A DNA stretch of 64,000 bases, from assembly GCA_010909165.1 (NCBI GenBank), contig VJWM01000135.1, positions 248,001-312,000 on the forward strand, written 5' to 3'. Both the position numbers and the translations under genes were made by a program. This document shows, one piece after another, positions 15,060-58,000 of the stretch. Within the stretch, counting starts at the first letter, position 1; every line of letters begins with the position of its first letter. The notes under the pieces are model-generated. The model saw only the letters and a list, made by a program, of their open reading frames with translations. It did no database searches and was not told where the DNA came from. Source of the DNA: Anthoceros angustus. Its lineage: Eukaryota > Plantae > Anthocerotophyta.

Positions 15060-15650
15060 ATCAAGGGTCCCTCTCTTTAGTATTTAGCGCTATTTGTGTG
15101 CATCTTAGTAGGCTGATGTGTCCTCCCTTTTGCCATACTTCTCAGCATTTGTTGTTGTTTCATCATTCTGAGGTCCGGTTGTGTTTTTAAAGTATGTCCT
15201 ATCGTGCTTCCTTCAAATGCGTCTGTGTTCTGGGTTACCCACCAGTGAACTTTCATGAATGGTGACTCACATTCAAAATATTTTTGGAGCACTTTCGCAA
15301 TCCAGAAGCGGCGGTTGGCATTGTCATTTTTGCAAGGAGCTGCTATCATATTCCCGACAGCGATCTCTGAAATATCCCCATTCAACCTCTCTCGCTTGCT
15401 TCGGCAGAATCCATTGTTCCGATAGGCTCTACTCTTCAGTGCTTCCTCAATTCTGCTCTTCAAAGAATTATGCGTGAAAGAGAAATCACGCTACGTCCAA
15501 ATGAGAATCGCCCTACTGTGCATCATCCTGAAGCAAGGCCTCCAAGTCCAAGCCCTATGGAGCTTGCAGACAACGGAGAGCCTTTGCAACCAGAAGCAAG
15601 GCAGCAGCCTACTCAGGTTGACAAAAATTTACATGTTCTGCCATCTTCAT
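15060..15650 (-). pseudogene. C-terminal fragment of a related Sola-like transposase (copy 1)
   Basis: RERLNGDISEIAVGNMIA...RRFWIAKV...MKVHWW aligns by eye with RWNGDIAEIKRGMFVAF...VHWY at 13.3 kb. Confidence 0.6.
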
Positions 15651-19730: not shown

Positions 19731-20081
19731 TCGTGCGTCTTTGTATATCTTACGGGAGTTAGGAAATAAGTAGGGTTTCTGTTTTTTAGGATTGAAGGAT
19801 AAATAAGGCGGAAGGAGGAATAAATTGGGGTAGCGCTTGACGAGGCTCAGGTATACTCCGGACTCGAGTGAACAACGGACCTTGCACTATATGACTGACT
19901 ACGCCGAATGTGGATAAGTCCGAACCCACCCCTGTGTCAAAATAGGATAAGTACGCCGGTAACCTAGGAGTGGAGGCGTGAATACACCTTATAACGGCCT
20001 CTCGGCAAGGTTCTGGTCCCAGCCTCATCGCATGCCCGACCTCCACTCGGGGCCGTCCACGCATATACCGCCTCAGCAAAA

Positions 20082-25741: not shown

Positions 25742-25789
25742 TACTCCCTTCTCATCATTGGCGTCTCGCCAACACTAAGCATGATACTT

Positions 25790-28700
25790 CTTCACCCACC
25801 CGTTTCAGTGGGCAGCTCTCCATCTAGGCCGTGTGGACGGACCCGTTGTCATATACTTGCACCACTTGATACGGACCCATCCATCTCGGTGAAGTTTGCA
25901 CGGAAAATGCATGTCGACTATCATAAAGGAGGCGGGTCCCTTCCTTTACATACTCGATTCCATGATCGGCGATCGTGCCAAATCTTTATTGGTTTTGCAC
26001 CATGCATCTTGGTGAGCTTCTTCCACATCCTCCTGTGTCTTTGCACAAACCCCAAGAGTCGCTCGTGGCTTTCCTCTTATCAGTCTCCCTTCCATCATTA
26101 CTCGAAAAGTGGGCACTTCAAACTCTCGGCATTACGGAGAGTGTGGTAGGTCAAGTAAGGGTCCGTTGTGTGGTCACCTTCTGCTGTCCGGGCATACGGT
26201 GCGGATGGCGACTTGGTATCGATCATGGGCGTAGTTCCTGTGAGTTTATTGATCCTGCGGATGAGCCCATTTGTCTTCTCTGTCACCCATTGGCCTTAGG
26301 ATTGTAGGGTGCCGTCTTGCGATGATTGATGCGAAATACTCCGTCATGGCGGCCACCACATCATTAAGGAAATGGGTTCCCCTATCACTTACCAAGCTAC
26401 GGCGGACATCCGTCGGGGTTATGATGTTCTCGTCACAGAATTTGGCCACGGTATTTGCGAGTCCGTTCTTGTCGCCAGCCTCTACCCACAGTGCGGTGGT
26501 CGTTGCCACGGGATGTATCTCCTTGTGTGTGTCTTGTCGTGGGCGTATGGGTCCAACAAAGTCAATACCCCACTTTTGAAGGTGCGGTGCCAATATCGGT
26601 ACTAGCGGCCCAGTGTCGTCGGGGTTGGCTTTCCGTCCGACAAGCATCACACTTCTTCTAAGCGGTGGGTGTCCCCATACATTGTTGGCCACCGGTATCC
26701 GCTTCAAAATCTTTTGGTGGTGACTGTCTTTGCGTAGTGTCCACCCCAATCCTTCGTGCATTCCCTTGACGGAGCTCCTCTCTGCGGTTGCAAGTACCTT
26801 CGTTCTACTCGTCAGGCCCTAATTTGAACACACACCGTTGTACATTACGAAGGGTCGAGCATAGTGCACGAATGCCTCCCTCATCACAGTGATTTTGAAG
26901 CTCCATTCCCAGTACCGCTCTATTTCTTCGTGGGTCGGACGGCGGCGGACCCTCCCTTCTCATACGCTAAGGCTGCAGTTCTCGTAGCTTGGGGTTCGTT
27001 TGGGCTCCTCGGTTGTACTTTTCTGCGGCAACCAATGTCTCATCCAGGAGCATCTTCACGATCTCTCAACACACTCTGTTTTCAATCGTGACGAAATGCA
27101 TTTTGGTCTTGCCTCCCTTGTCTTGTTTCCACTTGACGTGAACTCCTGCGGCAACAATATCCACCTTGCTATCCGTCCGGACGGTCCGTCTTATTCACCG
27201 GATGCTTGACGCAAAGTGGTCTACATAGAACACAAACTCCTTTGGGTAGTAGGTAGTGTCGAATTTCTTGGACATATACCATACCCGGTGCTTGGCTCTG
27301 TAGTTGTGTATTTTCGTTCGCGTGGGTGGTCCCGGTAGTATCACGGGATAATCCCGCTTGTCGTCCTTACGGCTCGGCACTACTCCGATAGCAAGCGGAC
27401 ACATCTACATACACATGAAATTTCTTGCTCGATCCGGTCCTCTTAGGAACCGGTCGCTTACCAAGGTGTTACGTAAATCCGAAGGCCTCCTCTCGCTCCT
27501 GACGGTCCAAACCTCCTCCTTCATGATGGTTACATCAACTTAGCGCCCTCTTAGCAAAGTCCTTAATAAACGGTAGTATCCCACCATTCCGAAACCTCTC
27601 GGCTCCTTTAGGTTCGTGTGGAGGCGGATGACCGGACCTTGTCTGGTCCACCTCGATTCCAGCCGACACCGATGTCGATTCCTCCGTCATTCCAAAGTAG
27701 CATTTCTCGGGTGTAGGCTCAATTGGAGTCTCGGCGCTCAAGCACCTTCTTAGATGCCCAAGGTGTTTGTCCTGCTCCCCATGCACACAAAATCATCCGG
27801 GAATATCTCCATGAAGTCCCTCGAAGTCACGGAAGGCGTTGGTCACCATACGCATGAGCGACCACAGGCGCTCGGTCATCCCAAAGGCACTTCTCTTGTA
27901 GGCAAGCGTACCCCACTCCGTAGTGAAGGTCGTCTTGTCGGTCAAACTCCCTTAGGTGCAATTGGTTATATCCGGAGTAGCCATCCGAGGAAGGAGTAAG
28001 TAGTCAATCCGACCACCTTGTCCAAAATGTCGTCTCTGAATGGCATCGGAAGTGGTCCTTCTCGTTCTGGCGTTGAGCTTCCTCAATCTTGGCATACCGA
28101 ATTTGTCTGGTTTCTTGGGAACCACCACAATCGCGACCCACTTTGTTGGCGATGGGGAAAATGATGTCTGCCTCCGGTACTTATCAAGGACCTCCTTCAC
28201 CTTGATCGAATACTTGGGGTTGAGCTTGTATTGTCGGATTCGGTGGCACGCTCCGGCTTCAAATCGATCTTATGCTCCCACTTCTTGAATGCCCTTCATG
28301 TCCGTGACCTTGAGGCGAACACCTCATAAAACTCCCCAGGTTGCTTTAGTCCTTCCTTGGTCCGGAGGCATGCCTTTCTTAAACTTGAGAATTTGCTGGC
28401 GGACCTCCACTTCTTCCACGTCGTCCGGGTTCACCGTCTCCGTTCCGTCTTTGCCTGCGTCAAACCCCTCGTCCTCCTCTCGGGGATCGTCCTCTCGCAT
28501 CCCCATTCTCGAAGAGCTCGTCGGAGGTGAATCGTGTTACTCCTTGATGTCGCTTTTCCTTGGTCCGACTCTTGTTGTCTCCCCTTGTCTTTGGTCCGAC
28601 TCCTCTTCACTTCCTTCCTCCGGCCCGTTGTGGCGTTTACTCAAAACAATCAACCACTTCGCCAAAGGCATCCGGTAGTCCATCTCCTCCTCGGACCGGC

Positions 28701-31318
28701 GGATCTTGGCGAAAGTCGCCTCCTCGGAACTATCTTGTTTCGCCGTGGAGTCCTCCATTTAGTATACCCCGGTAGTGCTCACGGTTTCCCCACAATAGGT
28801 GTCCTTGCTCCGGTGATAGCAACCTCCCTTCTCGCACCTTAGGGTCCCAGTCCACCGGCTTGAAGTGAATCTCCTTCCTTCCAAAGTGTAGCGTGCAGGC
28901 CAACCCACCATGGCCTGACAACACCTCATACCCTAATGGTCCGGCGGTTTGATCACAACAAAATCCGGTTTGTAGGGTGCGCGGCTATGGTGGCCAAGAC
29001 TCGGTTAACTCCCCGCGGATCTCTTCTTGACATATACGCCATTCTCGAGTCTTCGTTGAGGTTGAAGGATGTGAAGCCCAATTTTCGTGCCGTGGTGTGA
29101 TGAGGTTGACTCGGACCCGTGTCCAACGGTACATCCTTGATGATACATCCAATCTCCACTTGTACCACTGGCCCACAGGTCGTATGGGACACCACCCTCA
29201 CTTCCTTGTGCTACCCTTCACGGCTTTGGTGCTCAGTGGGTTTCCCTAACGGCCAGCGGACCTCTTGCGGTATTTGGGTTATCCCTCGGTGTCGAAAGGA
29301 CACAGTCTGGCGATTCATCATCGGTCGCCACATTAAAGGCGAGGCTTCTACCCCAATCGAGGATCCTGCTGCTGCGTCCTCATCCTCTCCCGGTCACGTG
29401 TTACGGTATTCTCCGGATGCTTGCGCATTTCCTCCTGCAACATCTCGGTCACCTCCGGACTACGTCCGTGGAAGCTAACGTCGCCGTCGCGGGAGGCGTT
29501 CCTTCTCCACATCTGTCGGAGAACTTCCTTGGGTAATCCCTCGGCGGCTGCCGTCAGCCCTCCTTCATCGGTCGGATCCTCTGCTGGTATTTGGTTTGAT
29601 TGCCTTCCTCGGCGTCGTGGCGCTTCCTCGATCTTGTTCTTCTTCAATGGCGCCTTTCTCGTCGCTCCTTCCTTTCTGAGTAGACACCTCAAGATTTCCG
29701 CCCGACTCCCTTCCTTCGACACCCCCGTACCTTCTTGTTCTTTTCCATCTCGCGTACCTCACAGGGAATCTCTTCCCACTCCATGGAGCATCTTGACTTG
29801 CCGTCAGGTCTTAGGAGGTGGCGTTGGTGGTCGGTTCTCCGCTTGGTGTGGCATATCGTACCGTCCTTGTGCGGGGTTGGGACATAGCGTCTTGCACATA
29901 TGCCCGGCCTTGCGATCGCCACCGCTCGAAGTCCCCATTACCACCTCGTTGGAGTGCGGACACGCGTTGGAGTAATGGCGAGATTCCCGCGGTTCCAGAC
30001 CACGGCCGTCGGAGGATACGAAGGGCTCCCATGCGGTCTTTGCATCGGTGGGGCCCGTTGTTAGCGGACCTCCGGTTGGCGGATACATGGTTTTGGGATA
30101 TCGCGGCCCGGAGGGGCTTCACATGCACGATAGGCCTCTTCCCATTGCTCCTCGGCCTCCTCCTCGTATTCGTAGTCCACTTGATGCACGGCCTTGAGGC
30201 GGTTGGACTTCGAATGGCCGTGTTCTTGGCACACGGCACACAGATGCGTTCGCCGTGGTCGGTGTTTTCCGCGCTCTCGGTCCTTAACACAGTTTATCGC
30301 GGTCCTCTACTCTCTTTATCACTTTTCCGGTCCTCCGGACTGCTACCTCCTTTGAGGGTCGGGTCGGTGGAGCTTCTCGGACGGTCTTTGGTGTCACCAC
30401 CTCCTTCTTACCACCACTTCTTTTTAGCGGGGCTTTCTTGCTCTTCTTCTTGCGGGATACTCTTCCTCGCTAGAGACCTCGTCTCTTCTTGGACTGCTCC
30501 TCCTCCGAAGACACCTCGATTGGTCTTCCTCCTCCTCACGAAGACTCTTCCTCCTCGATCTGAACCCGTTTCTTCTTCTTCTTCTTGCCTCCTTGAGCGG
30601 TTCTTTATCCTCGATGTAGCGATTCCTCGTAGTTTTCGGCCGCTCGACGCCTTGCCACGTCCTTCTCGGCGGCGGGGCGTGCACAGCCATGGGTTTGGCT
30701 AGACCGGCCGCGAACCACCGTCCGCTTGCATCGTGGTATGGGTTGGATGCGATCCTCGGGGCATAGAACCGCTCGATGTCTGAGCCCGGCTTCTCCTTCT
30801 TCCTCGCTTGATTTTCCAACTTTGATAATACATACCCCTCTGGTGATCCTCGAAACCGTTCTAGAAGGCATTTTCAAAGCTTCAAGCGAGGCGGGTGGGG
30901 CATTCTCCGGTGGTCGGTACTTTCTCCGATACCATTGAGCGGTTGTCCTCGGAGAACCCCTTGGAAAATTTGGATGAGTGTCGACTCCCTCTCCGTTGAA
31001 GTTGGCTTTGGACACGAAGTCCTCCACAAAGGTCTCGCATCCGCTCCTTCTTCCCTCCGAATATGGAGTCGCTTGTTTGGTCGGTAGGGGCCATGGCTGC
31101 GCCATCGATGGGTTAGGCGTGGGCTGTCCTACCTTCTTCCGTTGGCGTCCCTCGTACCCGTACTCGTCTTGGTCAATTCGACCACGTTCTCCCTCCTCGA
31201 TCGGCGGTGCTCTCTCGTTGGGTTTGGCGTCTCTCCCTCTCACGGCTCGGAGAGCGCGAGTGACCACGTCCGATCCTCCCGGCAGTTCACTCTTGGCCGT
31301 CGCTCGACCGCCACGCAT
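25790..31318 (-). pseudogene. gag-pol of the long-LTR Gypsy element
   Basis: gag FNGEGVDTH...AQWY at about 31000; protease VPLDTGPS at about 29130; RT WVAIVVVPKK...EIFPDDF at about 28140-27790; RNase H FVFYVDH at about 27230; integrase KWGIDFVGPI and LVSDRGTHFLN at about 26580-26370. Confidence 0.85.
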
Positions 31319-31382
31319 TCACTTACCTTCTCTTCCTAAGGGGCACTGCGGCACCACGATTTCATTCCCGGCAGCGCCAAAA

Positions 31383-34300
31383 TGTGGCGTGACTTTTCTT
31401 GATGGCGGCCGGGCGCACAATCCGTGTCGTTGTAGGAAGAAGTCCGTTCCCAAAGGGAATGATAGGCCCGTTTACGCGTTTGGTGATTCTTACCGTCCTT
31501 AGCGCTCGTTCGGTCTCACACACATACTCTAACTACTCACGCGTTCACCGTCTGAGGCCGGTATGGCCAAGCGTTTGAGACCCGTTCGCGTCCGTATCGT
31601 TCACATACATCCTTCACGCATCCGGTCCTTTCCTCTCTCCCTCACGCTACACTCTTGATCTTAGAAAAGGCGCGGTTCTGTGATCCGGACCTCCTCCGTC
31701 GTTCGGCCTCTCCGTCCGGGCTCTACCCTCCGGAGTTCCTCCGGCTCACGCGTTCAGTCCGTTCGGTGTCGGACGCGGCTCGGACGACACGGATCACGGT
31801 CACCCTTCCACACACACCACAGCGTTAAGTCCGTCACGGGACCTTGATCAATCTCCCGGGTATCCTTTCGGTGACTCGGGACTCACGTTAGCAAGAAGAC
31901 TCACAAAGGTGCAGAGCGGCATCAACACCAAGAGAAAGATGCTTTACTAGGCTCGGCCCTCTTATCTGCGCCCAAGGTGGCGTCTTTATTACACCCCTAT
32001 TACGGCGATAGCCATTTCGGTATACCTAATCGGCCGCCTACCATTATCCCCCTATCTCCTTCGCCGGTGTGGGAAGGTCACAGGCCCGCCTCGGAATGGG
32101 TGGTCAATCCCCGTCACAGCGGTTGTGGTGCACCCAATCGGATGATCCGTGAGGCGGGCCCCTCCTCTCCCGGAATCACATCGGGTTGGGCTCTGGCGTG
32201 ATGGTGCCGTTACCACGGCGTCATCCTCCCTGGCCTCCACAGGTCCTTGGCGGTGGGGCCACCGCTATCGGCTCCCCTAAGCGTAAGTCGAAGGGGCTCC
32301 TCCTTCTTGCCCGGCCGGTCCTCGAGGTCTGTCTCGACTCACGAACTTGAGTCGGCTTATTCACAGGTCGGCTAGGTCCGACCTTGTCTGGTCCGGACCT
32401 CGGGGTCGGTTGTCGGGTCGGACTTGAGTCGGACTTATTAGGTCGGACTTGAGTCCGGACTTAGGTCCGGACTTGGTCGGACTTATTCAGTCCGGACTTG
32501 ATCGGCCTCCCCTGAGGTCGGACAAAGTCGGACTCACGCCCAGGTTTCCTCCCTCACGGGACTCCTCGTGGCTCTCCCTCGAAGTCCTCCGGCTGTTCCC
32601 GATCGCCCGTGACTCCCGTTGGCCCCTCCTTCCATGGTGAGGTGCGGGGTGCTTACCTCGATCGCATCCGCTCCTCGTTCTGCTCCTCGGTTGCTCCTCT
32701 CCGCTCCGTCATCTCAAGCAGGGCCACTAGGGTCCCTGTCTTTGTCCCGTGGCCTTCATCTCCTTGAGCCTTCCGGTCCGTCCGTCTGCGGCGTCGAGAG
32801 GCTTCTCGCCTTGGGGGCTCGGTGGTAATAGGCAAAGTCAGATCGACTTGTTGGTGCCTCTTCCACGTGTGCGGGCACCGATACTCCCTCGCCATAAGTG
32901 TTAGGGGCTGGGCGTCTTTGCCGGCTTGTTGGGCCACCTCTCCTGCCCGGTTGTGTGGGCAGCGTATCACGAGGCTACAAGGCGGCCTCGGTCACCTCCT
33001 GCAGTGCTGTTGCTCCACTTGCTCCGGCTCCGTCGTTTCCTTCCATTGACTTACCGCCATAGCGCGGCGTTCCCTTCCGCCTTTCTCGGTGGACGGCGGC
33101 TTCTTTTACGCTTCCGGTGCTCGCGCTCCTCGTTCATTACGGCCTTTAGCTCATGACTCCCTCTCCAGTGAGATACCTCCGTCAGGCTCGGACTTCCTCC
33201 ATCTTACAGCACAGCAGCGTCCAACTCCTTGGATAGTCGCGATTTTCCTCCGTCTTGAGACGGGCCGGGGCACTCTGTTTGTGCTCGAGTCGTGGATTCT
33301 CTCGTTGAGAATCACTGCTGCTCAAGCGCATCTTGGGTTGTAGCTCGGCGTGTCCTTCTTGTCCTCCATCTGCTGCCGCCTCCTTCTACCTCCTGCTGTA
33401 CTCGGAGATCCCTATCTCCCGAGTGGCCCTTACTGCTCCATAGCCTTTGTCGGCCTTGAGTTAACCTCGGTGCACTGTGACTCTCTCCACGGTTCCGATC
33501 ACGTGCATGTGATCCGGTCGCTCTTCCGCGGCTTGACTCCTTCGCCGCCTTTGCAGGCCTCGCCCTTGGCCCTCTGGGGCCGCCTCCGCCAGTCCAGCTC
33601 TCTGCTTGTGCCGGGCCTCTTCCGCCTCTGCTGCGCTTCCCCTCTTCGCTGCAAGGTCCTCCGCTTGGGCCTCTGAGCTTGCTTGTTGTGCCTGGTGAAG
33701 AACCTTAACCTCTGCTGAACCGGGCCTCGCTCCGCCACCGGCGTTTCCCTTCCTCGATCCGGCGAGGGACTCCGCCTTTCCTTTGCCCTCGGCCTTCACT
33801 TGCTCTTGGGTTCCACCATCCTCCTCGGGTGGCCTCCACTTCACAGGTCTTCTCCATGTACCAGAGACCCCAAAGCATTCCGTCCATGGTGGCAGACTCG
33901 CCGTGTTTCTTCCACGGCCGCGAGTGAGGCCCCACAAAGTCCGTAGTGGGAGCCGGCATTTCTCGATCCGCCAAGGACCTCCATACCGATCCGGAGTAAG
34001 TCGGGGGTTCTCGGACCTAATCGGGACCCTCGGGTCACAGTGGTGGTCAGTCTCACCCTCTTTGGCCCTCTTGGCCTCTAACTCCTTTGTGCCCTCTTTC
34101 TCACAGGGCTCGGAGGAGGTGAGGGGTCGGGAGCAAGCTCTTTTGCCCCTTCACAGCCGGGGGCAGGGGCCGGCTCGAGGTGGGCTGCGCGGTGACCTCC
34201 TGCTCCTTGGGCCACGTCCTTCGCCCTCCTTACGCCTCTTGACCTCTTGCCACTCCGTGGGCGGGGTAAGTCTGGCACCGAGGTCTTTGCGTTGGTAAGC

Positions 34301-37300
34301 GGCACCGTCTTCCGCCTCTTGGCTCCCGTTGAGTTCGTCGGGGCTCGGCGGTCGTGGTTGTTGGTGTTGTACTCGGTGCGGGCCGCGCCCTCCGGCATCG
34401 GCTCCCTCATGCGGCTCGGAGGGCACCAAAAGGAGGAAGGGAATCGCCTCCCAAACTTCCACAGGTGGTGAGGGGTTCGCTCAGACGTAGTCAGGAATCC
34501 TCGATCGTCCTCCTCCAGTCCTTGGTCTTGAAGGGCGACCCCCACCTCAGGCGCCCTTGCACGCTCTACTTGGCGGGGCCTCCGGCCCCTTCGGGCCCTC
34601 AAGCTCTCCCTCCTTGAGCTCGAAATGTCCCCATACATGAATCGGTATGGGGTCGTCGGCCGCGAGGCTTCTCGCTCCTTAGCGTGCCTCTGGTGAGGCG
34701 AAGATAATCCTTCCCAGTCCGCTCTCTTCCCATTGGGCGCATGCAGAATACCAGCGAGTTATCACCAAGGTGATCCACCTTGGTGGCGAGTTCAATGGAC
34801 AATGATCCGGGCTACCGCCCTTACTCGGTATCCGGCGGATCGGATATCAACCATCCGTTGGTTGTCCGCGTTCGAGCCTCGGCATCGTGGTGGCCCTATC
34901 TTCCCGCCGCCTTAAGGGGCTCGGCACCGCCCCTTCTTCCTCCTTGGGTTGTAGCTCGGCGTGTCCTTCTTGTCCTCCATCTGCTGCCGCCTCTCCTCTA
35001 CTCCTGCGGTGTGCTCGGAGATCCTCTATCTCCCGAGTCTTGGCCTCCATCTCCATAGCCTTTGTCGGCCTTGAGTTAACCTCGGTGCCTCGGCTCTCTC
35101 TCTCCACCGGTTCCGATCACGTCTGTAGTGATCCGGTCGCTCTTCTTGCGGCTTGACTCCTTCGCCGCCTTTACAGGCCTCGCCCACTTGGCCTCCATCT
35201 GCGCCCTCCAGTCCCGAGCTCTCTGCTTGTGCCGGGCCTCTTCCGCCTCTGCTGCGCTTCCCTCTTCGCACCAAGGTCCTCCGCCGCGCTTGGGCCTCCC
35301 AGGCTTGCTTGCCTGTTGAAGAACCTTAACCCGGTCTGTGAACCGGGCCTCGCTCTCCACCGGCGTTTCCCTTCCTCGATCCGGCGAGGGACTCCGCCTT
35401 TCCTTTGCCCTCGGCCGCCTTCACTTGCTCTTGGGTTCCACCATCCTCCTCGGGTGGCCTCCACTTCAGGTCTTCTCTGTACCACGAGACCCCAAAGCAT
35501 TCCGTCCATAGTAGCAGGACTTCCGTGTTTCTTCCACGGCCAGTGAGGCCCCCAGTCCGTAGTGGGAGCCGGCATTTCTCGTCCGCCAAGGACCTCCATA
35601 CCGATCCGGAGTAAGTCGGGTTCTCGGACCTAATCGGGACCCTCGGGTCACGAGTGGTGAGTCGAGTCTCACCCTCTTTGGCCCTCTTGGCCTCTAACTC
35701 CTTTGTGCCCTCTTTCTCACAGGGCTCGGAGGAGGTGAGGGGTCGGGAGCAAGCTCTTTTGCCCCTTCACAGCCGGGGGCAGGCCGGCTCGAGGGGTGGG
35801 CTGCGCGGTGACCTCTCCTGCTCCTTGGGCCACGTCCCTTTACGCCCTCCTTACGCCTCTTGACCTCTTGCCACTCAGGTGGCGGGGTAAGTCTGCACCA
35901 CGAGGTCTTTGCGTTGGCGCGGCACCGTCTTCCGCCTCTTGGCTCCCGGTTCGTCGGGGCTCGGTCGTGGTTGTTGGCTGTTACGCCGGTCGGGCCGCGC
36001 CCTCGGCATCGGCTCCCTCACTCGCTCGGAGGGCACCAAAAGGAGGAAGGGAATCGCCTCCCAAACTTCCACAGGTGGTGAGGGGTTCGCTCACGTATGG
36101 AGTCAGGAATCCTCGGTCGTCCTCCTCCGAGTCCGCTTGGTCTTGAAGGGCGACCCCCACCTCAGGCGCCCTTGCACGCTCTACTTGGCGGGCCTCCGGC
36201 CCCTTCCGGCCCGCTCAAGCTCTCCCTCCTTGAGAAATGTCCCCATACATGAATCGGTATGGGGTCACCGATGGCGAGGCTTCGCTCCTTAGCGTGCCTC
36301 TGGCCCAGGCAGGCGAAGATAATCCTTCCCAGTCCGCTCTCTTCCCATTGGGCGCATGCGAGAATACCAGCGGTTATCACCAAGGTGATCCACCTTGGTG
36401 GCGTTCAATGGACAATGATCCGGGCTACCGCCCTTACTCGGCGGATCGGATATCAACCATCCGTTGGTTGTCCGCTGCGTTCGAGCCTCGGCGCGGCGTG
36501 GTGGCCCTATCTTCCGCCTTAAGGGGCTCGCCCCTTCTTCCTCCTTGGGCGGTTGTAGGCCATCCTCGGGACCTCAAGGTCCATCGCCTCGAGTCCTCCG
36601 GAGGTTCTTGGATCGGACCTCCTTGTTGATCGCCGCCCGGCATCTTCGGGCAAACTCCGGACTAGGTAGCGTTGTCAAGGTCCAGACCATTTGGAACACG
36701 TCGGATGCCACTCTGCACCAATTCCCTGCTTCCTCCGGCCGGGGCCCGAAGTCCGGATAGCGCGGGTCACAATGTTGCGCTCCACGGTCCATGGCTCCCA
36801 GACTTCCGTCGGCTTTTGGGTGCCATTGCTTTCTCCTCCTCTTGTTCTTTGTAGGCTGCTGGAGTCCGTGGCACGATGTTCCTCGCCGCCCGTTCTTGCT
36901 CCAACCTTGATGCGCCACGCTCTGTGGCGCCCAAAAAAAGCGCGAGCGGATTGCGGGCGCAAGGCTGTGAGGATGCGGAGGCTGGCAAATGACCTCCCTC
37001 CTTGGCGCGCTTGTGGAAATGCTGGCGGAAGGCGCCTCTTCGTTGTCCGTAGCGCGAGTGCATGGCTTACTCGACCCTCGCTTGCTTACTGCGGCCTTAC
37101 GCGCCGCGCGCGCGGGCGTGAATACTGCCTGCGGCCTCAGCAGGTTACGGTCTGACCTCATGCCCGACCTCCACTCGGGGCCGTCCACGTGGCGCCGCCT
37201 CGTCATCCTCACGCCTCGCTCCTGGGTTACTTTCCTGGCGTACTTATCCTATTTTGACACTGGGTGGGTTCGGACTTATCCGTTACTCGTGGTCGGAGCT

Positions 37301-37455
37301 TGCCATAGTGTGCGGGTCCGTTGTTCCTCCAGTCGGAGTATACTCGAGCCTCGTCCGGCGCTACCCCAATTTATTCCTCCTTTTCCTTATTTATCCTTCA
37401 ATCCTAAAAAAGCGAAACCCTACTTATTTCCTAACTCCCGGAAGTGCATATTACA
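31383..37455 (-). repeat. 5' LTR, about 6.07 kb, with an internal tandem duplication of about 1.61 kb
   Basis: Colinear with 20082-25741. The duplication anchor gttgtagctcggcgtgtccttc occurs at about 33337 and about 34947. Confidence 0.85.
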
Positions 37456-37814
37456 GTCTTAAGCCAATTTGTCGGCCTTGTATTTTCAAAACCCGACTTG
37501 CTCACACTTCTTCACAGTTTCACCGGCCTTGTTGCAAGGGAAAAGAGGGGCTGTCGAGGCCAAACAAAAGAAAAGTGCTAAAATTCTACCTATACCCCGG
37601 TGATGGGAAGGAAACAATCGAAAAAAGAAAGAAACAAGGCATCAGCGTCTGAAACAAATGCCACATGGAACCAAGAATGAGGCCAGCAAGAATCCTAGAA
37701 CTCTGCGGCCGCATTCACAATGGAAAGCAGGTGCGTCTAGCAAACAAAAGGTCACACAATTCCATCACACCGGTAACATCACATGGGTAAAATCAAGCAG
37801 TCATCACGAGCATT

Positions 37815-37950
37815 TCCGGCACACTTTGCACAATACGAGTTGCTCGAGAACGACTGCGGCGGAGGGTAAGGCAAAACAAATGAAAACCCCATTGCATCCG
37901 TCACGGAAGCATAAGCTCCTCATCATATCCTCCCACAAACGCACGGGTAG
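37815..37950 (-). CDS. PHD finger at the integrase C-terminus (frameshifted)
   Basis: Three-frame reconstruction gives DYPCVCG / GYDEELML / DGCNG / FHLFCLT / YCAKC, a C4-H-C3 pattern. Confidence 0.7.
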
Positions 37951-40789
37951 TCGCGGTGGAATCCAATTGTTATCACGTGGGTCCAAATTAGGTAAGTGGC
38001 GGGCGCACGGTTCTTGGTATGGTGCCGCAATAGTCCTACCATCGAGCCACGCAAAATCGGCACTCCATTGGGCCTAACTTCGCACCCTCGGCACATGTCT
38101 GCTGCTAGATGTCAAGGTGTCCACAGTTTGCCTTTGCAAGTATCGAAATCCCCAATCTGGAATTTCTTGACTTGGGCTGAATGACCACTGGTGTCGCATC
38201 AGTAAGGAATCCGGTCTTGAGCTATGTTGAGGTTGGCCATAGCCATTGGCATAACTGCCGAAATAGTGCCGCTCCCCAATCACTCGAGCCCATGGCGGGA
38301 TCATCAAGGCATACCACCTCCTGCATCTTCTTAGCTATTGTACTCGTGACCGGCTCACGACCAAAAGCAAGTAAGGGAGAAGTGTGCCAAGGCGCATGTT
38401 TACTCATGCGGTAGCCCATAGCGATGTAGGCGGCATGAGGTCCCAATCCTCCTTTTCCACGCTGCAAGCATAACTTTCAGCCCTTTTTGATGGTGCGGAC
38501 CATCCTTTCGACCGGCCATCGGCTGAGGATGGTCCCCTAGTCCGCACTGTGATCGATAAGCGCAACATCTAAAAGGTCACGAAATTCCCTCTAAACTCGA
38601 GCCACAGTCGTCGGGCACTCGGCACTACCGGCTAAGCACGTGTGCAAAAATGCAGGGCGTGCTTGAGGACTTATCGATAGAGCCACAACCTCCACCCATT
38701 TGGAGAAATGCTCCATCATGACAAGTATGTAGACATTGCCTCTCGGCGTCCTAGTCAATTCTCCAATGAGGTCGCAGGACCGGTGAAAGAACAAGCCCAT
38801 GATGGGCGAGGGTGGAGAACGGTCTTTGCATAGTAAAGGAGGCCTTGACTCGGTCACAAGGCTCACGAGCCACATTCTGCTTTTGGTTGTGCATCCCATA
38901 CCAATAAAAATGAGGTGTGAGCGGTAAGTCCGCTTCACACCAAAGTGACCATGTCGTGCACCACGACGTGTCAGTCGACCCTATCACGGTGGTGGCACCA
39001 AGCGCTCGACACCATTGCCCGACTTGCGAATCATGTAGCCATCACGCCAATAGTCTTTATTCGACCGACTGCTGCCTGTTCTTTTCCTGGGTCGGGCCTC
39101 GTCCATACGCCGTGCAAATCAAGAGCATTCACATCTTCCCAAATGTCCTTTGCATTAGGGTTTGAAGCAAACACAATCATCCAAGGCGGTCATGGCAACA
39201 AGGGCTGTTGCCGGCATGACATCGGCACCAATCTCCTCCTCATGGTCCCCTAGCCTCGGTGACATCACTGCACGTCCGGATTTCTAGATAGCATGTGCAT
39301 TTTGGTGTGTCACTCGGCTGCTCCACAAGGAAGTCATAATCTTGAAGTATCATGGCCCGTGAGCCGACTTCCCACTCAATTTTGTGTTAGTCATCAGCCA
39401 TTTCAATGGTGATGATCGATCACTAACAAGCTGACCATACAAATATGGGCGGAGTGGCAACGGCCCAAGCAGGCACTCCCCTCATAGCTGCATGGTGGCC
39501 TCCGCTCGGTTATTACTCCTCGAGGCATAGCGATCACGCGCTCCTTGCCCCGCTCATCCTCTTGTGCAAGCACCGCCCAAGTCCCGAACGGCTCAATCGG
39601 TGTGTAACACAAATGGCTTGCTAAAATCGGCCTAGCCATGAGGTGACCTGGTCAATTGCTCCTTCAACATGTCAAAAGCTTGCGCCAACTCATCCATGCC
39701 CATTCCACGTCTTTCCTCAACATGTCATTCAAGGGTTTCGCAATTGGTGAAATTCGAATGTAAACCATAATAGTTGCATAACCCAAGAAAGGCACGCAAG
39801 GTGACACGTTGGTGGGCTCCTTCACTGCAGGATATGTACCTTGGCTGAGTGGGGCATCACCCGTTAGCACGATTAGTGACCTAAATATGCCACGTGTTCA
39901 TTCCAAATTCACATTTGGACGGGTGACATGTGAGCTCTGCCTTCCTTAGCCTCTGAACAGCTCCTCTAAGTGTGCCGGTGATCCTCAAAGGCGATCTTGT
40001 GAACCGGCCGTCGTCGATATAGCACAACAAGTTGGCACATCCGGTAAAACGGATCCATCACCGAAAAGTGGCGGGTGCGTTCTTGAACCGAATGGCATCA
40101 CCAGCCATTCCACGGTATTGGGACCCGTGAAGCGCGGTCTTCTTGATGTCCTCTTACGGAATCGGTTAAAAACCCGAAGGTCCAAAGTAGAGAAGAAGAG
40201 GCGTAATCTTGTCAAATATCTCCTCGGGGTCGGCATTGGGTACCGATCCTGCGTGTGACGGCATTGATGGGACGATAGTCCCCACATCCGTTCTCCGTCC
40301 ACCCTTGGCATCCTTCTTTGCGGCATGACGATTCTTTGCGGACATAATCATTCTTTGGATAGCCGGATAAGCCACCTTCAAGAAGCTCACACACTAGCAT
40401 CGACCATCTCCCTCCGTCTTGCTCAACTGTGGCGCGGTAGATGGGCTCACTGGTCGAGTTGATCCGAAATCTGATCACATTGCGGCGCTTGAGGTCCTTC
40501 ATGGTAAAAAGCGATCCGATACTTGAGCGGGAGAGTGTGGATGCGTGTCTTACATCGTCATCCATCCCCATGCGCCACGGAAAGTCTCGGCATTTAGCTT
40601 AGGCTTTGCGGGACTGGATCATCTAGCTCTCTGGTGGAGGCGAAAAAGCAAGGGACGCCACGGACACACTCCACCCCACGCATCCGGCCCGAAGGCATGT
40701 ATGCATATCCGAGAAAAGGGAGATGAAGCTGCTGGACACATCTTGGCGATGGGCTCGTACCATATGCGCCAGCGTGGGTGAAAAGCCAA

Positions 40790-41645
40790 GCACTCACTAA
40801 CCACGTGAGTGCGTGAACATCCATGGCTCGCCTAGAAACACGCTTCTTGTTGGTGGTGTAACCGTAGAGGCTGGCATAGAATGGGAAAGCCCATAATGCG
40901 TTCGCTCCGGCCAGTGGGTTCCTCCCACTGCTGCGTGTTAATTCAGCAGCCCCTCGGCCCTATAATGAACACGGAAAGCTAACGGTGTGGCGGCTGCGAG
41001 GCGGCGGTGTGTTGGTTTTGAACCAAGGCGCCGCTCACGGCGTAACAAGCACGGCTGGTGATGATCCTCCGGCCGATTGAAGCTGCAAGGACGGGTCCCT
41101 GTGTGCCACGCAGCAGTCTCGCGGGGCGGACCAAGTTGGTCGATAATTCCTCCGGTGAGCAAAGCGCCCACAGGCCGCATCTAACGGGATGGGAGGCCCG
41201 GCATAATCTTGAACCAGCCATGTCCTGCACATGTGCTCTGCTCAAATTGCGCGGTGTATTCTCAAGGAGGTAAGCACCGCGGGTTGTATTCTTGAGCCCA
41301 TGTGAGGACTGATGTAGATCCACAGCGACCACGCGTGCATCTTGTAGACCACTCCATGCCCGGCTTGGGAGAACCCACAGCATTCCCAACAATCACCATA
41401 TCCACATTTCCCAAGGCACGAATGTGGCCTTCTTGAATGTAACGGACATCCTGCGGTAGGCGGTGAAAAGCATGATAGGCCTCCAAGGCGATTCTTTGTG
41501 GAAAACGCTCATGCGCCCTTGCGGCTGAACTGCGATCGTCTTTGTGACATCATTGTCACAATACGTATCGGCATGTGACGATCCGGTCATCAAGAGAGCC
41601 TCGGCCCGATGAGATCCGCCAAAGAGTTCTACCACCGTCAGTCCC
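40790..41645 (-). CDS. C5-cytosine DNA methyltransferase domain inside pol (frameshifted)
   Basis: Motif I VVELFGG (41635-41615); LPQDV; motif IV VDMVI.GWECCGFSQAG (catalytic Cys codon 41382-41380); GLQDAR; motif VI YLLENT (EN at 41263-41258); motif VIII LDAA..AHRR..TNL; motif IX ERIMGFP (about 40900); motif X LG.AMD (about 40825). The motifs are in canonical order and spacing. Confidence 0.88.
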
Positions 41646-44600
41646 AGACGATGGCGCCCATGTAATCACATTGTGATCCTCGATCTTGAGTGGGCTGGTT
41701 AACACTGAATCAACAAGTGCATCACTGGCACTCTGTCTCTTACATCTTTCAGCGTGAGCACCTGGATGATCGGGTTGTGCAAGGGCATGTTGCAAGCTGT
41801 GAGATCCATGGGAAGAATGGCGTCATCGGCTTCAAGATTGTGCATCGCTTTGGTTAGCATCTTGGACTAGCTTCCTGACATTGCAGGGGCTCCTTGCTAG
41901 CATGGCACACCACTAACGTGACGATCTCTGTGGCCGCTGCAAGTCAAGGGAATATGTGCTAGCCGTCCTCCTGCTGCCCGGTCGGAGATGAAACTGCTCG
42001 TCAATTATCCACTCCTCGCCGGTGGGAAAAGAAACTCCATCTAGCGCGGTGTAGTTTGTGGCCGTGGTCACCAAGCACGGAGACATGGTCATGGCATCCG
42101 ATGAGCCTGGATTCAATGTGATGTGCACAGGCTCCGAAGTCTCGCCACACACAGGCTCCACAGCCCCAGAGGCTGTGCGGATGTTCCATGGGGATTTGCG
42201 AAGTGCTTCTCCCTGCAAACCAAGCCGTCTTTGCCGGCTGCCTATAATATGGTGGCGCGATCCAACACCACCACAGGTGCAGTAGTTGTGATGACCCGTC
42301 CCTCTCGGTTGTCTACCACTGCGTTACTCACTCGCATTCGCAGCCTGTTGGTAGTGGATGCGTGGATATCAAACTGGAAATTGATCATGCGGGTCATTTG
42401 CAATGGAAGCATCCACGGGCTCCACTGAATTTACTAACGGTGATCCGGAAAGGAACAAGTCCCCGGACTGCAAATCTCCGGCACGAGCAGCGGGTGACTT
42501 CCTGTATCTGCAGATTCTTTGGAGACGTTCCCCATGCCCATGTCCCGCAAGGACATTAATGGTGCTGCAACAACCGTCTTTGCCCTGCTCATGTGTGACC
42601 AAAGGGGCATCATGTACAATTGCCCTAAGCGAGGGCTGCCTCATCTCTGTCTGCATTGGCTCTGTCTTTGTCACCGGAGTGAAGATGTATCCACCTGCGT
42701 AATGGGATGGCGGTTCAGTGTGAGGCATAAAGGATTGAGGCATTGCTGCCCTTGCTCCTCAGCTGGTGATGGGCCCCGCATTTGCTAACACGATGTCCGA
42801 GCCAAGAGATTAATGGCATGCCCAACCCATGTAGGTGGCACATCTTCCCTTAGCTTGTCACGAGGCAGCTCATCAACACCTCATGTGGGTGTCCATAATC
42901 TTCTCCATTGTTTCGCCACCGGCTCTGCGACCTGCGAGCTTAGCTCCACCAGCTTTACTGAGGCTGGTTGTAAGCGTGCCCACCTGTGCTGCCAAGGCAG
43001 CCACCGTGGCCTCCAGCGACGTCATCTTGTCCGCGTTTGCTGCAACCTTGGCTTTCGCTTTCTCCCTCTGTTGCTTGCTCTTAGAGTCCCCAGCTGCAGG
43101 AGTTGCTCCTGCTGTCTTGATGCTAGCTGTAGCATCTCCAGCTGATGCCGACTTCTGGTATCTCCTCTCGGGGTGAAGTTGAAAGCACACGGTGCTCACA
43201 TGACCATTCTTTTGACAATGAGTGCAAAAGAGGCCTTCAGGTGGGCACTTGCAATTGTGAGATGTGCTCGGGCGCCACAATGGTTGCACATGGTGGTGTA
43301 GCGTGGTGCGATCACTTCATTGCTCCTTGGTTGGCTTAGGCGGTGTAGTCCTTGAAGAAGTTCCCCGTGACCTTGCTTGAAAACATGCCTTGATAATGGT
43401 GGAAGGCCTTGGAATGCTTGGAGGAGAAGGCAGTAAGCAATCTCTTTCTTCTCCGCTTCCTCATGTACTGCTGCAAAGTATAGGCATCGCCATACTTATC
43501 CACAAGTGAGGACAACGTGGAAATGAAACGGTGATCACCCTCAAAAGTGAGGAATTTCTCCACGCTTCTTGGTGCAGTGAGCATGCAGGTCCCATCTCGC
43601 AGCTTTTGCGACCTCGGAAACACATGGGTCTCCCTTTCCCGTGCAAAGCTTGACTCATAATCTTCTCGGGAGTCTTGAGTGGAAAAGCCTTCTCGAGGAT
43701 CTTCATGAACTCTTCCACAGGTTGGCATATTTGGGGGTGTGTATGAATTCATCAATCCCTGCGTGGTTTGTCCTCTCTGGCCGTGAGAGGAGGCATCACG
43801 GTGGGTGGCGGCAAATGGCGGCGATGCTGCGATATACTGGTGTCACTTGACCCACTTGGCATTGTAGGCCATCTGCGGTGCCCTTGGAATAATGGATTGG
43901 ACGGCCGTAGTTGAGGTCACGCTTGGTGGGCTTCATACAAATCCGGGGCCTCATCGACCATGTATCTTGATAGTATTCGAACATGTAGAGGTGGTTATCG
44001 CGGCCCATGTTTGAACTTGACCCTACTAATTGCCTCATTGACTGACCTAAAATCCCTCAACGATTGTGTTCTGGCCCGAGAATTTCTCGCCACATTTGGC
44101 CCTCCTTCCATCGTGTCGAATCACGACGGGTCCTCTTGCCTGGGTCTTACATGATAAATGCGGGGCCGAGCCACGAGGAAAGGCCTAATCCCGCCCTCCA
44201 GCGGTGCACTCCCCCACACTGCGGCCCCTGCTCCTCCTTATCAGTCACACCGCACAAGGTGTAAGTGGGGACCAGCTAACCCTAACTGGTGCAAAGGATC
44301 CTTGTCCGGGCTCCTGTGCTGGTAGGTCCTCTAAGGACAAATCTTGCGTGGTGCCCTTCTCCTTCTCACGAAAACCACAGGCGCGTCCCTCGTTCAAGCG
44401 ATGCAGTGGGCTATCTCCCTCTTCACCGGTGGCATGCCCCATGTAATCAAGACGCTGCTGAGTCAAGGAAGCCAGCATCAATTGTCATGCGGAGGAAAAC
44501 CTTAGCTGCGAGAATGAAAACAAACGAACACGCCAATCACCTCGGATCCTCCCTCTGACCTCAAGCTTTTTCGATGCCTCACTCACACGAGAATCCTCAG

Positions 44601-45147
44601 CCTGTTCGACTCACTCCTCGTGCTCGTCTGTACAAGACCCAGCACCTACCCGCAAGAGAAGTGTTGGTGCACATAGCCAAATTCCCCAACTAAAACCCTT
44701 AGTGATCAACTTCTCCCGGGCATTCAGTCCACTGTTTCTCACTCGAAAGTAGACAAAAATGATACCAACGGATTCGTCTCAACGAGGCAAACAAGATGGT
44801 ATGCAAATTGAAAGCAGCCGACTCGTGTGGCGATCGCTATGAGCTCTGGACGGCCGTGGAAACTTGCTGCGGTTGAGACATGGGAGGACTCAAAAATTAT
44901 GAGAGGGCCTTGAGTTGTGCGGCCGCGGGCACACAGCTGGCCTGGAAAATCCCGCCCAGCACCCTTGGTAGTAAAAACAAGTCCTGCAGCAATCTGACCA
45001 TGCACGAAACCCTAGCAAAATGCACACCACGTCAAGCCCATAGCTGAAGCTGGGGTCAAACTGCAGAGCCGTAAGGGTGCAGACTCCTCCTGTGCTCCAG
45101 GCCAAGACAGAATCAAGTTGAATGCTTCTCGAAGCAGTTGTCAAAGT

Positions 45148-45652
45148 AGACAAGCACCAGCGCTCACATGTGCTGATGCTCACTTCCGGTTCAGAAAATT
45201 AAAAGGGGCTGCCCTACACGGGCTGCCTAGAGCTGATAAGTCCCGCGAACACTGCACATTACACACATTGCCACAATCTTTGAGCAGCGCATACACACAG
45301 TCTTTGCATTCTGACCTAGAAATTCGACAACAACAAAATTGCGTGTTCATTAGCGTTCCTCCTAGGGACTTGACAAGCGCCTTCCACAGCCTTGGTCTTG
45401 TGCTCGCAACCGCAACCACCTTGCGTCAGTGATAGGTGCACCACTCTTGGTGCCGGCATCTCTTGGATTGGAGTGATCATGTCCTTTCTCCCACGCGAGT
45501 GTGTGAGAGGGAGACCGCCCAAGCTTGGCCATTTTGCGGGTTATTTCCCGACTTTCTGTTTAAGGGCATTTAGTAATTATCGGTACCAACCAGTTAAACT
45601 AACAAAACCTACTTGCTAAGCCCTAGCTTCTAAGAGTTAGTTCCTAGCATCA
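45148..45652. repeat. Right part of the 0.7-kb LTR-like repeat, ending in ...TAGCATCA
   Basis: Matches about 15950-16500. Confidence 0.75.
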
Positions 45653-52176: not shown

Positions 52177-55708
<3,532 letters not shown>

Positions 55709-56887
55709 AGTCCAATTCCACCCCGCCCCAACAGCAGCAGAGAGACCAATTCACAAACCCAGCACCACAATCCTGCTCCCGCCCAGCCCTAACTGCGATT
55801 CAGATGCTGCTTCCAAGAACGTGGCTCCCTTCCCCGGGCAGCCTCCAAGCCGCCCCGACCCACCACCAGAACCTGGCTCCTTCATGGCGCCCAACTCGGG
55901 GCCTCCCTCCAGCTCCCCGCACCCGCACTTCAGCCCAAAACCCAAGTCGGCTCAGCAGGCTCAGTCCCAGCAGGCACCGGCATGCGTGAAGAAGAAAATG
56001 GAGCAGGCACTCATATTCCGACAAGGCACGCAATTGCAAGCTGGGGAGAGCCGGAGCTCGGGAGGAGAAGCATCCGGTTCCGTACCTGGCTGCGCTGCAG
56101 CAGCAGCGAGGCGGTAGGAAGGGGCAGAGGATGATTGCAATCGGTGCGAGGCGGGAGCATGACATTTGAAGCAGCGGGAGTGGTGGAGTCTGCGTGCTGC
56201 CTGATTGCAGCAACAGGGCGACATGGCGGCAATCGGGTCCACGCATTCCCAGAATGATTGGTTTATTTTCATGCAGTGTGCTCCGACAGGGCGGCGGAAA
56301 AGCGGAGGCCCTCACAAACAAAACCACAGACCCACAAAACCACAAAACCACAAAAGGGCCCATCCATCGATGAATTCCCTATGTATGAATACGAGAATAT
56401 TCACATTATCTGCGCACGCTGCGCCTGACCGCAAACCGGTCACACTGCTAACCGGACAACTTGTCGCAGTCAAAGCCCCGTCTCAACGTGCCTTGTTCGT
56501 AACCTCCACCTACTACTACCTACCTTCAGTGGTGCCTCGAGTCCCAACTACTCTTCACGAGACCGGGTCTTGGGAATCGGACCCTTCAAAAACATTACCT
56601 CTCTTTTTTGCTGGTGCTTCTTTTTTGCTTCTTGCCTCTTCCTTTCTGCCTCTTCCTTTCTTCCTCTTCCTTTCTGCCTCTTCCGCTTTCTGCCGCTTCT
56701 GGTCGTGTGGCCACCCATTTTGTCTCTCTGCATATTACACAACAACATGAAGACATCTCAACCAACAACATGAAGTCGATCTCAACCAATTGCATTATAA
56801 CATGTAGTACACCTGGAAAAGCTATGACATTGTGATAGCGGGAAGGGAGGTGGAAGTTCTTGCGCATGGCTAGCTGGATTTGATTGG

Positions 56888-58000
56888 ATGGAGGAAGGGC
56901 TACTTCCTGGGCTACCGGATGATCTTGCTTTGCAATGTATGTTACGGGTACCACGGATTTATCATGTGAGTATGCGGATAGTGAATTCGCACTGGAGGCG
57001 GTTGGTTGGGAGTAGTACATTCTACTCAGAAAGAAAGAAGCTTGATATTTGTTGTGCGTCCATCTTTTTCTTGCCTCAACAAAGCAAGCAAGTGGATGTT
57101 TTGGATTGCATTGAGTTTGATTTGGTGTCCAAAACAAAAGTTAGAAGATGCTTTCGCAATCACTTCATAAGGGAGAGTATCTTTTTAGATGGTCATGGAT
57201 GTGCGTCTGTCGGAAAGTGTGTGCTGGTATTTGGAGGGCAAGAACATGGACCAAAGTACAAAGCTCATGGGCACTTGAATATTTTTGATACCATGACGAC
57301 GCAGTGGACTCGGGGAGCGAGTATGTTGGTTCCTAGAGGAGGTATGGCATGGGGAGTGCTTAAAAACCACTTGGTTGTAGCTGGAGGTTATGGAGGAGAA
57401 GGGATAGGTTCTCGTATTGAAGCAGAGGTTTACAACTTGAATAAGAATGAATGGTGGCCGGTAGCTAGTCTACCCTATATGTTGCTTATTGACTTGTTCT
57501 TTGTCTTGAAGGAGAGACTCTTTGTTAGGGGTTGGATTCGTGAAACTCATTCATCCAAATTGGTTTCATATCATCTTAACTCTAATACTTGGAAAGAAGA
57601 GCCTGAAATGCTTAGATATCTTCAAGGTTCAGCTCCCTTTTGTTTGAACAAAGTTGCAACTACTTCAATCGATAATTCCATCTTTATGTTAGAGGTGAAA
57701 GACTCCACCGTTGAACCACAAGCAGAGACAGAGCCTGTGCTTCTTAATATCATGAAGCTTGATACCAAAGAGAGAAAGTGGAAGAAAATATGCAGGATTT
57801 TGGATGAGGTTATGCATTATGATTGTGAATGCTCGTTCGAGAGAGATGTTCGCTTTCACAGCATGAAAGACAAAGTTGCAGTTTTAGACCACTCTGAAGA
57901 CCAAGATGATATTGAAGTGAAAATAGTTGGACAAAGAGAGGTGCTGAGGGTTTCTATCCTTTGCCCATCGCAGTGGACAACAGCGGTTATTGAGGCTTAA
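56888..58000 (+). CDS. F-box/kelch-repeat protein, intronless, 370 aa
   Basis: LLPGLPDDLALQCMLRVPR F-box, plus kelch repeats VLVFGG...WTRGASMLVPR and LVVAGG...EVYNLNKNEW. Confidence 0.9.
   Translation: MEEGLLPGLPDDLALQCMLRVPRIYHVSMRIVNSHWRRLVGSSTFYSERKKLDICCASIFFLPQQSKQVDVLDCIEFDLVSKTKVRRCFRNHFIRESIFLDGHGCASVGKCVLVFGGQEHGPKYKAHGHLNIFDTMTTQWTRGASMLVPRGGMAWGVLKNHLVVAGGYGGEGIGSRIEAEVYNLNKNEWWPVASLPYMLLIDLFFVLKERLFVRGWIRETHSSKLVSYHLNSNTWKEEPEMLRYLQGSAPFCLNKVATTSIDNSIFMLEVKDSTVEPQAETEPVLLNIMKLDTKERKWKKICRILDEVMHYDCECSFERDVRFHSMKDKVAVLDHSEDQDDIEVKIVGQREVLRVSILCPSQWTTAVIEA

Follow-up and report, generated by a model that had tools for sequence, protein, structure and literature searches.

The closest described system to the element reported here is KnitGypsy-Dnmt3 of the charophyte alga Klebsormidium nitens, in which a DNA methyltransferase (DNMT) lies inside the pol region of a Gypsy element and the coding region is flanked by DIRS-like split direct repeats in the order A-coding-B-A-B (de Mendoza et al. 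2018, PMC5890265). SymbioDIRS-Dnmt3 and SymbioLINE-Dnmt of Symbiodinium (PMC5890265) also are DNMT-encoding retrotransposons, the DIRS type again with A-coding-B-A-B repeats. In the literature searched, DNMT retrotransposons are reported from dinoflagellates and from a single charophyte alga, a further Copia case in Aureococcus being doubtful, and a 2025 survey cites only the streptophyte and dinoflagellate cases of 2018 (PMC12344493). We analysed a stretch of 64,000 nucleotides (nt) of the hornwort Anthoceros angustus (GenBank assembly GCA_010909165.1, contig VJWM01000135.1, positions 248,001 to 312,000 of the forward strand), hereafter called the window, whose first letter is position 1. An initial annotation of this stretch had claimed a Gypsy retrotransposon with a C5-cytosine DNA methyltransferase between protease and reverse transcriptase (RT), apparently in a land plant, and had known of no embryophyte case; on this last point our search agrees with it, as no DNMT-bearing retrotransposon in a land plant was found in the literature searched. 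Judged from its sequence, the element of the window belongs to a family of Gypsy elements that carry a C5-methyltransferase domain of their own and an integrase ending in a PHD finger; it matches KnitGypsy-Dnmt3 in architecture and repeats and lies in bryophyte-linked DNA.

No single piece of the methyltransferase region is recognisable by standard tools, and a frameshift-tolerant test was therefore needed. The profile was a hidden Markov model (HMM) of 13 C5-methyltransferases, Dcm of E. coli and 12 diverse phage enzymes; a custom local aligner matched profile positions to codons, with steps of 1, 2, 4 or 5 nt allowed at a penalty. The core of the domain (motifs II/III to VI, 41489-41218) scores 34.9 bits against this bacterial and phage profile, with four frame changes. 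It reads NVDMVIVG / CCGFSQAGHGV / GLQDARV / SLWIYIS.HMGSRIQPAVL / LLENTPRNL, facing evDvilgGFPCQdfSvAGkraGfedeRgtLFfevvRiIeelrPkylvlENVkGL on the profile side of the alignment. When 240 overlapping tiles of 1 kb, taken on both strands, were scored in the same way, the two tiles with the domain gave 34.9 and 34.0 bits, the best of the other 238 gave 20.6 and the median was 15.9. The maximum over 300 dinucleotide shuffles of the region was 24.9 bits (Gumbel p ~3e-6), and the flanking motifs, tested separately in their expected intervals, had a combined p=0.006. The initial annotation had asked for a frameshift-aware alignment over this region; run with the 13-enzyme profile, it came out in favour of the annotation, 14 bits above the other tiles. 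The presence in the window of a predicted C5-methyltransferase-like domain, beyond what chance would give, is confirmed.

The single stop-free pieces are as uninformative as had been claimed. Pfam gave no match for ten pieces of the methyltransferase region nor for ten pieces from the rest of the element, and when E values up to 10 were admitted only RVT_1 (0.11) and rve (0.1) appeared among the window pieces. Nothing relevant was found for four window pieces in the PDB with phmmer, no match for a piece of 137 amino acids (aa) among phages with tblastn, no match for a 90-aa piece in a word-indexed protein search, and no usable match for a window piece in the ESM Atlas. Our own HMM, applied piecewise with hmmsearch, gave no signal either, and only its frameshift-aware version detects the domain. 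An exhaustive search of 1.84 billion representatives with the 137-aa piece, which holds only about 25 in-frame residues and left this search nearly blind, returned the repeat protein P0001, whose score had accumulated over repeats, and a weak 261-aa match, both of them spurious. This silence of the single pieces in Pfam, in the PDB and in two very large protein searches is what one would expect if the motifs were a pattern arisen by chance, or if an unrelated fragment, such as a host DNMT pseudogene or a piece of another element, had landed in one Gypsy copy. The profile score of the domain tiles, which no other tile approaches, speaks against this explanation, and so do the related elements described below, which come from another host and carry the domain at the same place.

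The relatives were reached through the integrase. The piece 38594-38980 of the window matches 27 proteins with Integrase_H2C2 (PF17921), zf-H2C2 (PF09337) or rve (PF00665), with E values down to 3.5e-15, and the contigs behind those of these matches that are most like the window were scanned with the methyltransferase aligner. Contig L015 scored 56-57 bits and L025 36.6 bits, while the full profile gave 48-51 bits for L025, L027 and L028; in each of L015, L025, L027 and L028 the signal immediately precedes the RT. Only background was obtained for L014, a host contig, and for L016-L019, which are generic Gypsy contigs. The domain of the window aligns to the read-through of L025 over 41669-40780 with 118 bits and 114 identical residues out of 283 (40%), when the null maximum in 216 tiles was 29. 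This end-to-end alignment, together with the same place of the domain in L015 and L025, excludes a nested unrelated fragment, unless these contigs are chimeric, and we give next to no weight to the explanation by chance motifs or by a stray fragment as a whole. With plain tblastn, the pieces of L025 find in the window only a 10-residue match at motif I.

L025 has the best-kept domain. It reads LLELFGGIGTGLKAL (motif I, LLELFGGIGTG), YVDIDPIA, SGWESQGF, GLNDIRSGLFMDMVRLI and VIKNTP, then CGSYVQRLRN and ERERAMGFQ...LLGRGMDLNSFTWLL downstream. Its read-through, with X at the breaks, is found by our HMM with plain HMMER (25.2 bits, E 5e-10, motif I aligned). In the PDB, its 67-aa piece finds M.HhaI in every one of ten matches (10/10), the alignments lying over motifs IV-V and including SGWESQGFLASGFGKGLNDIRSGLFMDMVRLI, and the ESM Atlas places both L025 pieces among PF00145 clusters, with 0.96 (93/100 matches) and 0.90; phmmer against the PDB found no DNMT with the N-terminal and C-terminal pieces of L025. 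In L015 a protease motif is followed by the methyltransferase from motif IV on, before the RT; the methyltransferase reads VDLIISGWECQGFSMTGF*EGLNDIRSGLFTDMVRLI...VIENTP, and its motif VIII region is LDATQCDSYAHRLRN. We also observe, at L015:5209-5460, that the protease motif VLLDIGAQ stands only ~170 nt before motif IV of the methyltransferase. From the sequence read, L015 seems to have lost about 600 nt, namely the linker and motifs I-III that L025 keeps.

In the window, the predicted C5-cytosine methyltransferase domain occupies 40780-41669 of the minus strand (motifs I to X) and is read across ~12-16 frame breaks and one stop. The six motifs on which the initial annotation was built are all found on the minus strand where it had placed them, in order between 41635 and 40795 and split over three frames; it was right about order and positions, but over the 890 nt there are ~12-16 changes of frame, a number above that of the joins it had made. 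Motif I, the candidate S-adenosylmethionine (SAM) binding site, is VVELFGG at 41615-41635 (15.5 bits, p=0.012). Motif IV, immediately preceded by a frame break, is WECCGFSQAG at 41359-41388; the codon at 41382-41380 encodes its candidate catalytic Cys, and GFSQAG follows. Motifs V-VI (GLQDARV / SLWIYIS.HMGSRIQPAVL / LLENTPRNL) belong to the core alignment given above, motif VI itself, LLENTPRNL, being at 41243-41269 with ENT in the place of ENV. The region of motif VIII, LDAACGRFAHRRNY at 41143-41184, aligns to NVAQCGSYVQRLRN of L025; against the bacterial and phage profile its FAHRRNY is not distinguished from background (p=0.38), but it is homologous to AHRLRN of L015 and VQRLRN of L025. Motifs IX and X span 40795-40903 (14.8 bits, p=0.028), with ERIMGFP at 40903-40883 and FLG/RAMDVHALTWLV at 40838-40795. 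They align to ERAMGFQI ... LLGRGMDLNSFTWLL of L025, and this pair (ERIMGFP, FLG/RAMDV) is kept in both L015 and L025.

The domain stands within a recognisable Ty3/Gypsy coding region, all on the minus strand. A weak gag-like region at 43707-44166 aligns to the gag open reading frame (ORF) of L015 with 26.5 bits, within a collinear tblastx chain with that contig. The CCHC zinc knuckle of gag is at 43182-43308, with 49.5 bits and 22 identical residues out of 44 to a piece of L015; the knuckle, CTHCQKNGHVSTVC, is in the ORF 42873-43289, and the tblastx high-scoring segment pair (HSP) covers 43253-43182. The C-terminal part of an aspartic protease (PR) follows at 42004-42230: the protease of L025 (VLLDTSAQ...NATSYDV), taken from its read-through, aligns here with 48.5 bits (p<=0.007), whereas the highest of 146 null intervals gave 28.0. 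The RT and RNase H lie at 39434-40508, where the alignment to an ORF of L021 with RVT_1, RT_RNaseH_2 and RT_RNaseH reaches 327 bits at 57% identity; the window piece 39884-40057 is itself a sub-threshold RVT_1. The integrase, with an H2C2 zinc finger and an rve core, is at 38231-38980, where the piece 38594-38980 matches the Gypsy integrases mentioned above; its rve core (38773-38446) has 129 bits and 69% identity to the rve ORF of L020 and 118 bits to the integrase of L015. A C-terminal extension of the integrase, at 37809-38419, ends in a PHD finger; its alignment to an ORF of L020 with PF00628 (PHD) scores 193 bits at 59% identity, the Cys/His pattern being largely kept in the window. This alignment bears out the PHD finger that had been annotated at 37809-38078, and a PF00628 module follows the integrase in L020, L021, L025 and L028.

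Considered together, the 27 Gypsy integrase matches and the alignments of RT-RNase H, integrase and zinc knuckle to Pfam-annotated relatives uphold the Ty3/Gypsy identity given by the initial annotation. The ORFs of the relatives are recognised by Pfam as RVT_1 (1e-19), RT_RNaseH (1e-18), Integrase_H2C2, rve and PHD, and tblastx of L015 against the element yields a collinear series of about 20 HSPs that starts in gag, extends to the integrase end and includes motif IV (sum E 4e-44). The pol order PR, RT, RNase H, integrase is present in the window (PR 42230-42004, RT-RNase H 40508-39434, integrase 38980-38231), and the methyltransferase (41669-40780) does lie between the protease and the RT, as had been annotated. 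L025 shares this order, with protease, methyltransferase, RT-RNase H, integrase and PHD finger. The DNMT is on the same strand as PR and RT and collinear between them in the window and in L025; no copy has an unbroken frame, and we infer a single ORF. Both the window and L025 show, as predicted domains, the order gag, PR, methyltransferase, RT, RNase H, integrase, PHD.

We then consider the repeats. A terminal repeat A (copy 1, 490 nt, 45160-45651, minus strand) lies upstream of gag and is 80% identical to other copies of A (19257-19719, 17518-17982, 18415-18880 and 15953-16506). A terminal repeat B (copy 1, 110 nt, 37487-37596, minus strand) lies downstream of the coding region and is 80-82% identical to other copies of B (19154-19244, 18247-18347, 17415-17505 and 15831-15950). 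A second pair of A (19257-19719) and B (19154-19244) forms a unit at 19154-19719 of the minus strand, with further units down to 15831. The junction between A and B is contiguous in the four units at 15.8-19.7 kb, and at the element it is split by a coding segment of 7.55 kb. A pair of long terminal repeats (LTR) was sought inside 37601-45141 and none was found there, which leads to the reading by split repeats. In the orientation of the element the layout of the window is A 45651-45160, coding region, B 37596-37487, a nested block, A 19719-19257, B 19244-19154; L015 shows the clean form of A-coding-B-A-B, with A1 at 1681-1887, B1 at 9087-9261, A2 at 9265-9472 and B2 at 9595-9768. We first considered that the 7.55 kb had simply been inserted into some unrelated satellite, but gave this up because L015 shares the A-coding-B-A-B layout. 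The units 17415-17982 and 19154-19719 are 99.6% identical to each other; set beside the excess of gap openings between repeat copies given below, this suggests that small-indel noise affects the repeats of the assembly unevenly.

The block that separates copy 1 of B from copy 2 of A is 17 kb long (20062-37158) and is not part of the element. It is GC-rich (0.52-0.63), has a strongly negative AT skew and contains repeats of 1.6-2.1 kb, alike at the level of 88-90%; inverted segments border it on both sides (19749-20061 and 37159-37444), and Tandem Repeats Finder (TRF) found no short-period array in it. We consider it probable that 45651-37487 of the minus strand and the repeat pair 19719-19154 are one methyltransferase-carrying Ty3/Gypsy copy, with the mechanism set out further below.

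Compared by architecture and description, the element resembles KnitGypsy-Dnmt3 in its Ty3/Gypsy domains, in the predicted C5-methyltransferase within the pol region and in the A-coding-B-A-B repeats. It differs from it in its hosts, Anthoceros angustus and the Sphagnum samples instead of an alga, in the PHD finger after the integrase, which the text of PMC5890265 does not mention, and in the Glu-Cys of motif IV. Of the elements of Symbiodinium, the DIRS type uses a tyrosine recombinase and the LINE type an endonuclease; the integrase here is of the DDE kind and has an H2C2 finger, and the RT-RNase H is of Gypsy type. The chromoviruses likewise have a chromatin-reader module fused to the end of the integrase; theirs is a chromodomain, while the C-terminal module here is a PHD finger. 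Arthropod Copia elements with a methyl-CpG-binding domain (MBD) took up a component of DNA methylation too (PMC6673714), but that component is a reader, and here it is a writer-type domain, the methyltransferase, in a Gypsy element. Finally, bacterial type II C5-methyltransferases of the M.HhaI type align with the domain at motifs IV-V, and a profile made from such enzymes finds it in the window; they have Pro before the Cys and QxRxR as motif VIII, in contrast to Glu and AHRxRN here, where the domain is embedded in the putative polyprotein of a eukaryotic retroelement. This AHRxRN presumably resembles DNMT3 more.

The copy of the window is heavily broken. To align ~2.9 kb of the element takes 84, 47 or 19 frame changes as the frameshift penalty is varied; of the 47 required at its middle value, 45 are of the deletion type, and no enrichment of the breaks at homopolymers was found. 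In-frame stops are rare, about one in 981 matched codons. Natural decay normally brings several substitutions for each indel, while an excess of gaps over mismatches is typical of unpolished long-read sequence in repeats. Such an excess is seen between the repeat copies of the window (21983-37450; 15953-19719/45160-45651), where gap openings outnumber mismatches 93 to 78, 65 to 53, 75 to 64 and 37 to 32. Many of the breaks may be assembly noise, because the stops are few, because 57-69% identity is kept and because gaps exceed mismatches in the repeats; we lean towards the opinion that spurious small indels, placed in repeats by the assembly, account for much of the breakage. The many small gaps in the repeats of this assembly bear on the reading of every transposon copy in the genome.

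Alternatively, the breaks would be real, the copy old and dead, and the family perhaps extinct in this genome. The very number of breaks, from 19 to 84, agrees with this, as does the 17-kb block nested within the element; moreover, the host ORFs of the window (479, 370 and 414 aa) are unbroken, which means that the assembly is not noisy everywhere. On the other hand, one stop in about 981 codons and 57-69% identity of RT and integrase to the moss relatives represent too few substitutions for such a number of indels, and the first three comparisons between repeat copies above again give more gap openings than mismatches. We give a dead copy a chance somewhat below even. Whichever the origin of the breaks, the copy as assembled is non-functional, its frame being broken about every 30-150 nt. 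We observe, in addition, unbroken RT-RNase H ORFs of 398-475 aa in three contigs of the Sphagnum medium metagenome (L020:39-1316, L021:195-1622 and L022:77-1273), which end just upstream of the RT. From these unbroken ORFs, younger copies of the element family may exist in moss.

What the domain does must be judged first on motif IV. C5-methyltransferases canonically have (Phe/Pro)-Pro-Cys at this motif. Here we read Trp-Glu-Cys in the window and in L015 (GWECQGFS), and Trp-Glu-Ser in L025 (GWESQGF); the Glu in the place of Pro before the Cys looks like a trait of the family, as far as three copies can be read. The initial annotation had reported that the catalytic Cys was retained and that the Q expected after it read as C. 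The candidate Cys (41382-41380) is indeed there, but the change from Q to C belongs to the window copy only, as the residue after the Cys or Ser is Q in both L015 and L025. At motif VI, ENT in the window corresponds to VIENTP in L015 and VIKNTP in L025.

The proposed mechanism is the following. The methyltransferase would be made within the polyprotein and freed by the protease of the element; once freed, it would methylate cytosines de novo, either on the new DNA copies of the element or on nearby host DNA. The PHD finger of the integrase would read the tails of histone H3 and in this way steer integration. The window copy as assembled, its frame broken as often as it is, could not carry out this mechanism. 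Three further observations weigh against our interpretation. PF00145 is absent by Pfam from every stop-free piece of the window, L015 and L025, these pieces being 27-172 aa long with few consecutive motifs each. No open methyltransferase or pol frame occurs among the copies seen, the polyprotein being deduced from collinearity. Lastly, Glu for Pro, Ser for Cys in L025, and ENT or KNT for ENV make the catalytic competence of the predicted enzyme doubtful.

The same substitutions raise the question of whether the domain is a true methyltransferase relic that is catalytically dead or was repurposed, for example as a DNA- or SAM-binding module, and is retained for some function that is not methylation. 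Two separate copies (window and L015) have Glu-Cys where Pro-Cys is near-universal, L025 has Glu-Ser, motif VI is ENT or KNT, and no intact copy was seen, all of which fits a dead or repurposed domain. But motifs I, IV, V, VI, IX and X survive in order across three diverged copies, and this speaks for the fold having been under constraint as a whole; two copies out of three keep the candidate catalytic Cys; and in copies that are decayed or noisy the calls of single residues are weak. We hold a dead or repurposed domain to be rather unlikely. What the enzyme does for the element could be approached through two concrete features, the Glu-Cys motif and the PHD finger of the integrase.

The host of the family was considered from the genes and from the source of the relatives. 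L015 and L020-L024 come from tissue metagenomes of Sphagnum girgensohnii and S. medium (PMC9584203). The Sphagnum-metagenome contigs range from 20-44 kb in length and have ~36-38% GC, and three samples yielded the same locus. The samples of L025, L027 and L028 are probably peat-moss-associated as well. It is likely that the contigs of the relatives are moss nuclear DNA. In the window itself, the host genes are an ANF-receptor (GLR) exon, an F-box/Kelch ORF, an SDR fragment and a RING gene. The F-box/Kelch protein has two strong homologues in 5.8 billion clusters, one with 75% identity (Logan assembly SRR33208241) and one with 48% in the fern Pteridium aquilinum; no near-identical protein was found in these clusters. 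The land-plant host supposed by the initial annotation agrees with this, the fern protein being the nearest named homologue, and with the presence of relatives of the element in Sphagnum tissue metagenomes; the F-box/Kelch homologue by itself suggests the land-plant placement weakly.

If the host were instead a streptophyte alga, the element would add nothing beyond the published case of Klebsormidium. That the F-box/Kelch gene has so few strong homologues in so large a collection leaves some room for this; the fern as the nearest named source, the want of any near-identical protein and the peat-moss tissue samples from which the relatives come all make it improbable. With a bryophyte host, it may be, although we propose it only tentatively and regard it as somewhat doubtful, that a lineage of PHD-tailed methyltransferase Gypsy elements inherited from streptophyte algae persists in hornworts and Sphagnum, and that some of its copies are intact, expressed and writing methylation on new insertions or on host chromatin. 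If the family does exist in hornworts and peat mosses, a transposon bearing the very tool by which transposons are usually silenced was not lost at the move to land, and the element could be studied in tractable bryophytes with known methylomes.

Two observations on the neighbouring host genes remain. GLR (ANF_receptor, minus strand) and F-box/Kelch (plus strand) are adjacent at 53878-58000 of the window and also at L014:6094-11134, a 24-kb Logan contig of SRR33208241; this adjacency is, on the predicted genes, a case of conserved synteny. At 61945-63799 the window has two long minus-strand ORFs of 414 and 209 aa without a Pfam match; on the corresponding side of L014, the syntenic contig, an 884-aa product is encoded (12430-15084).

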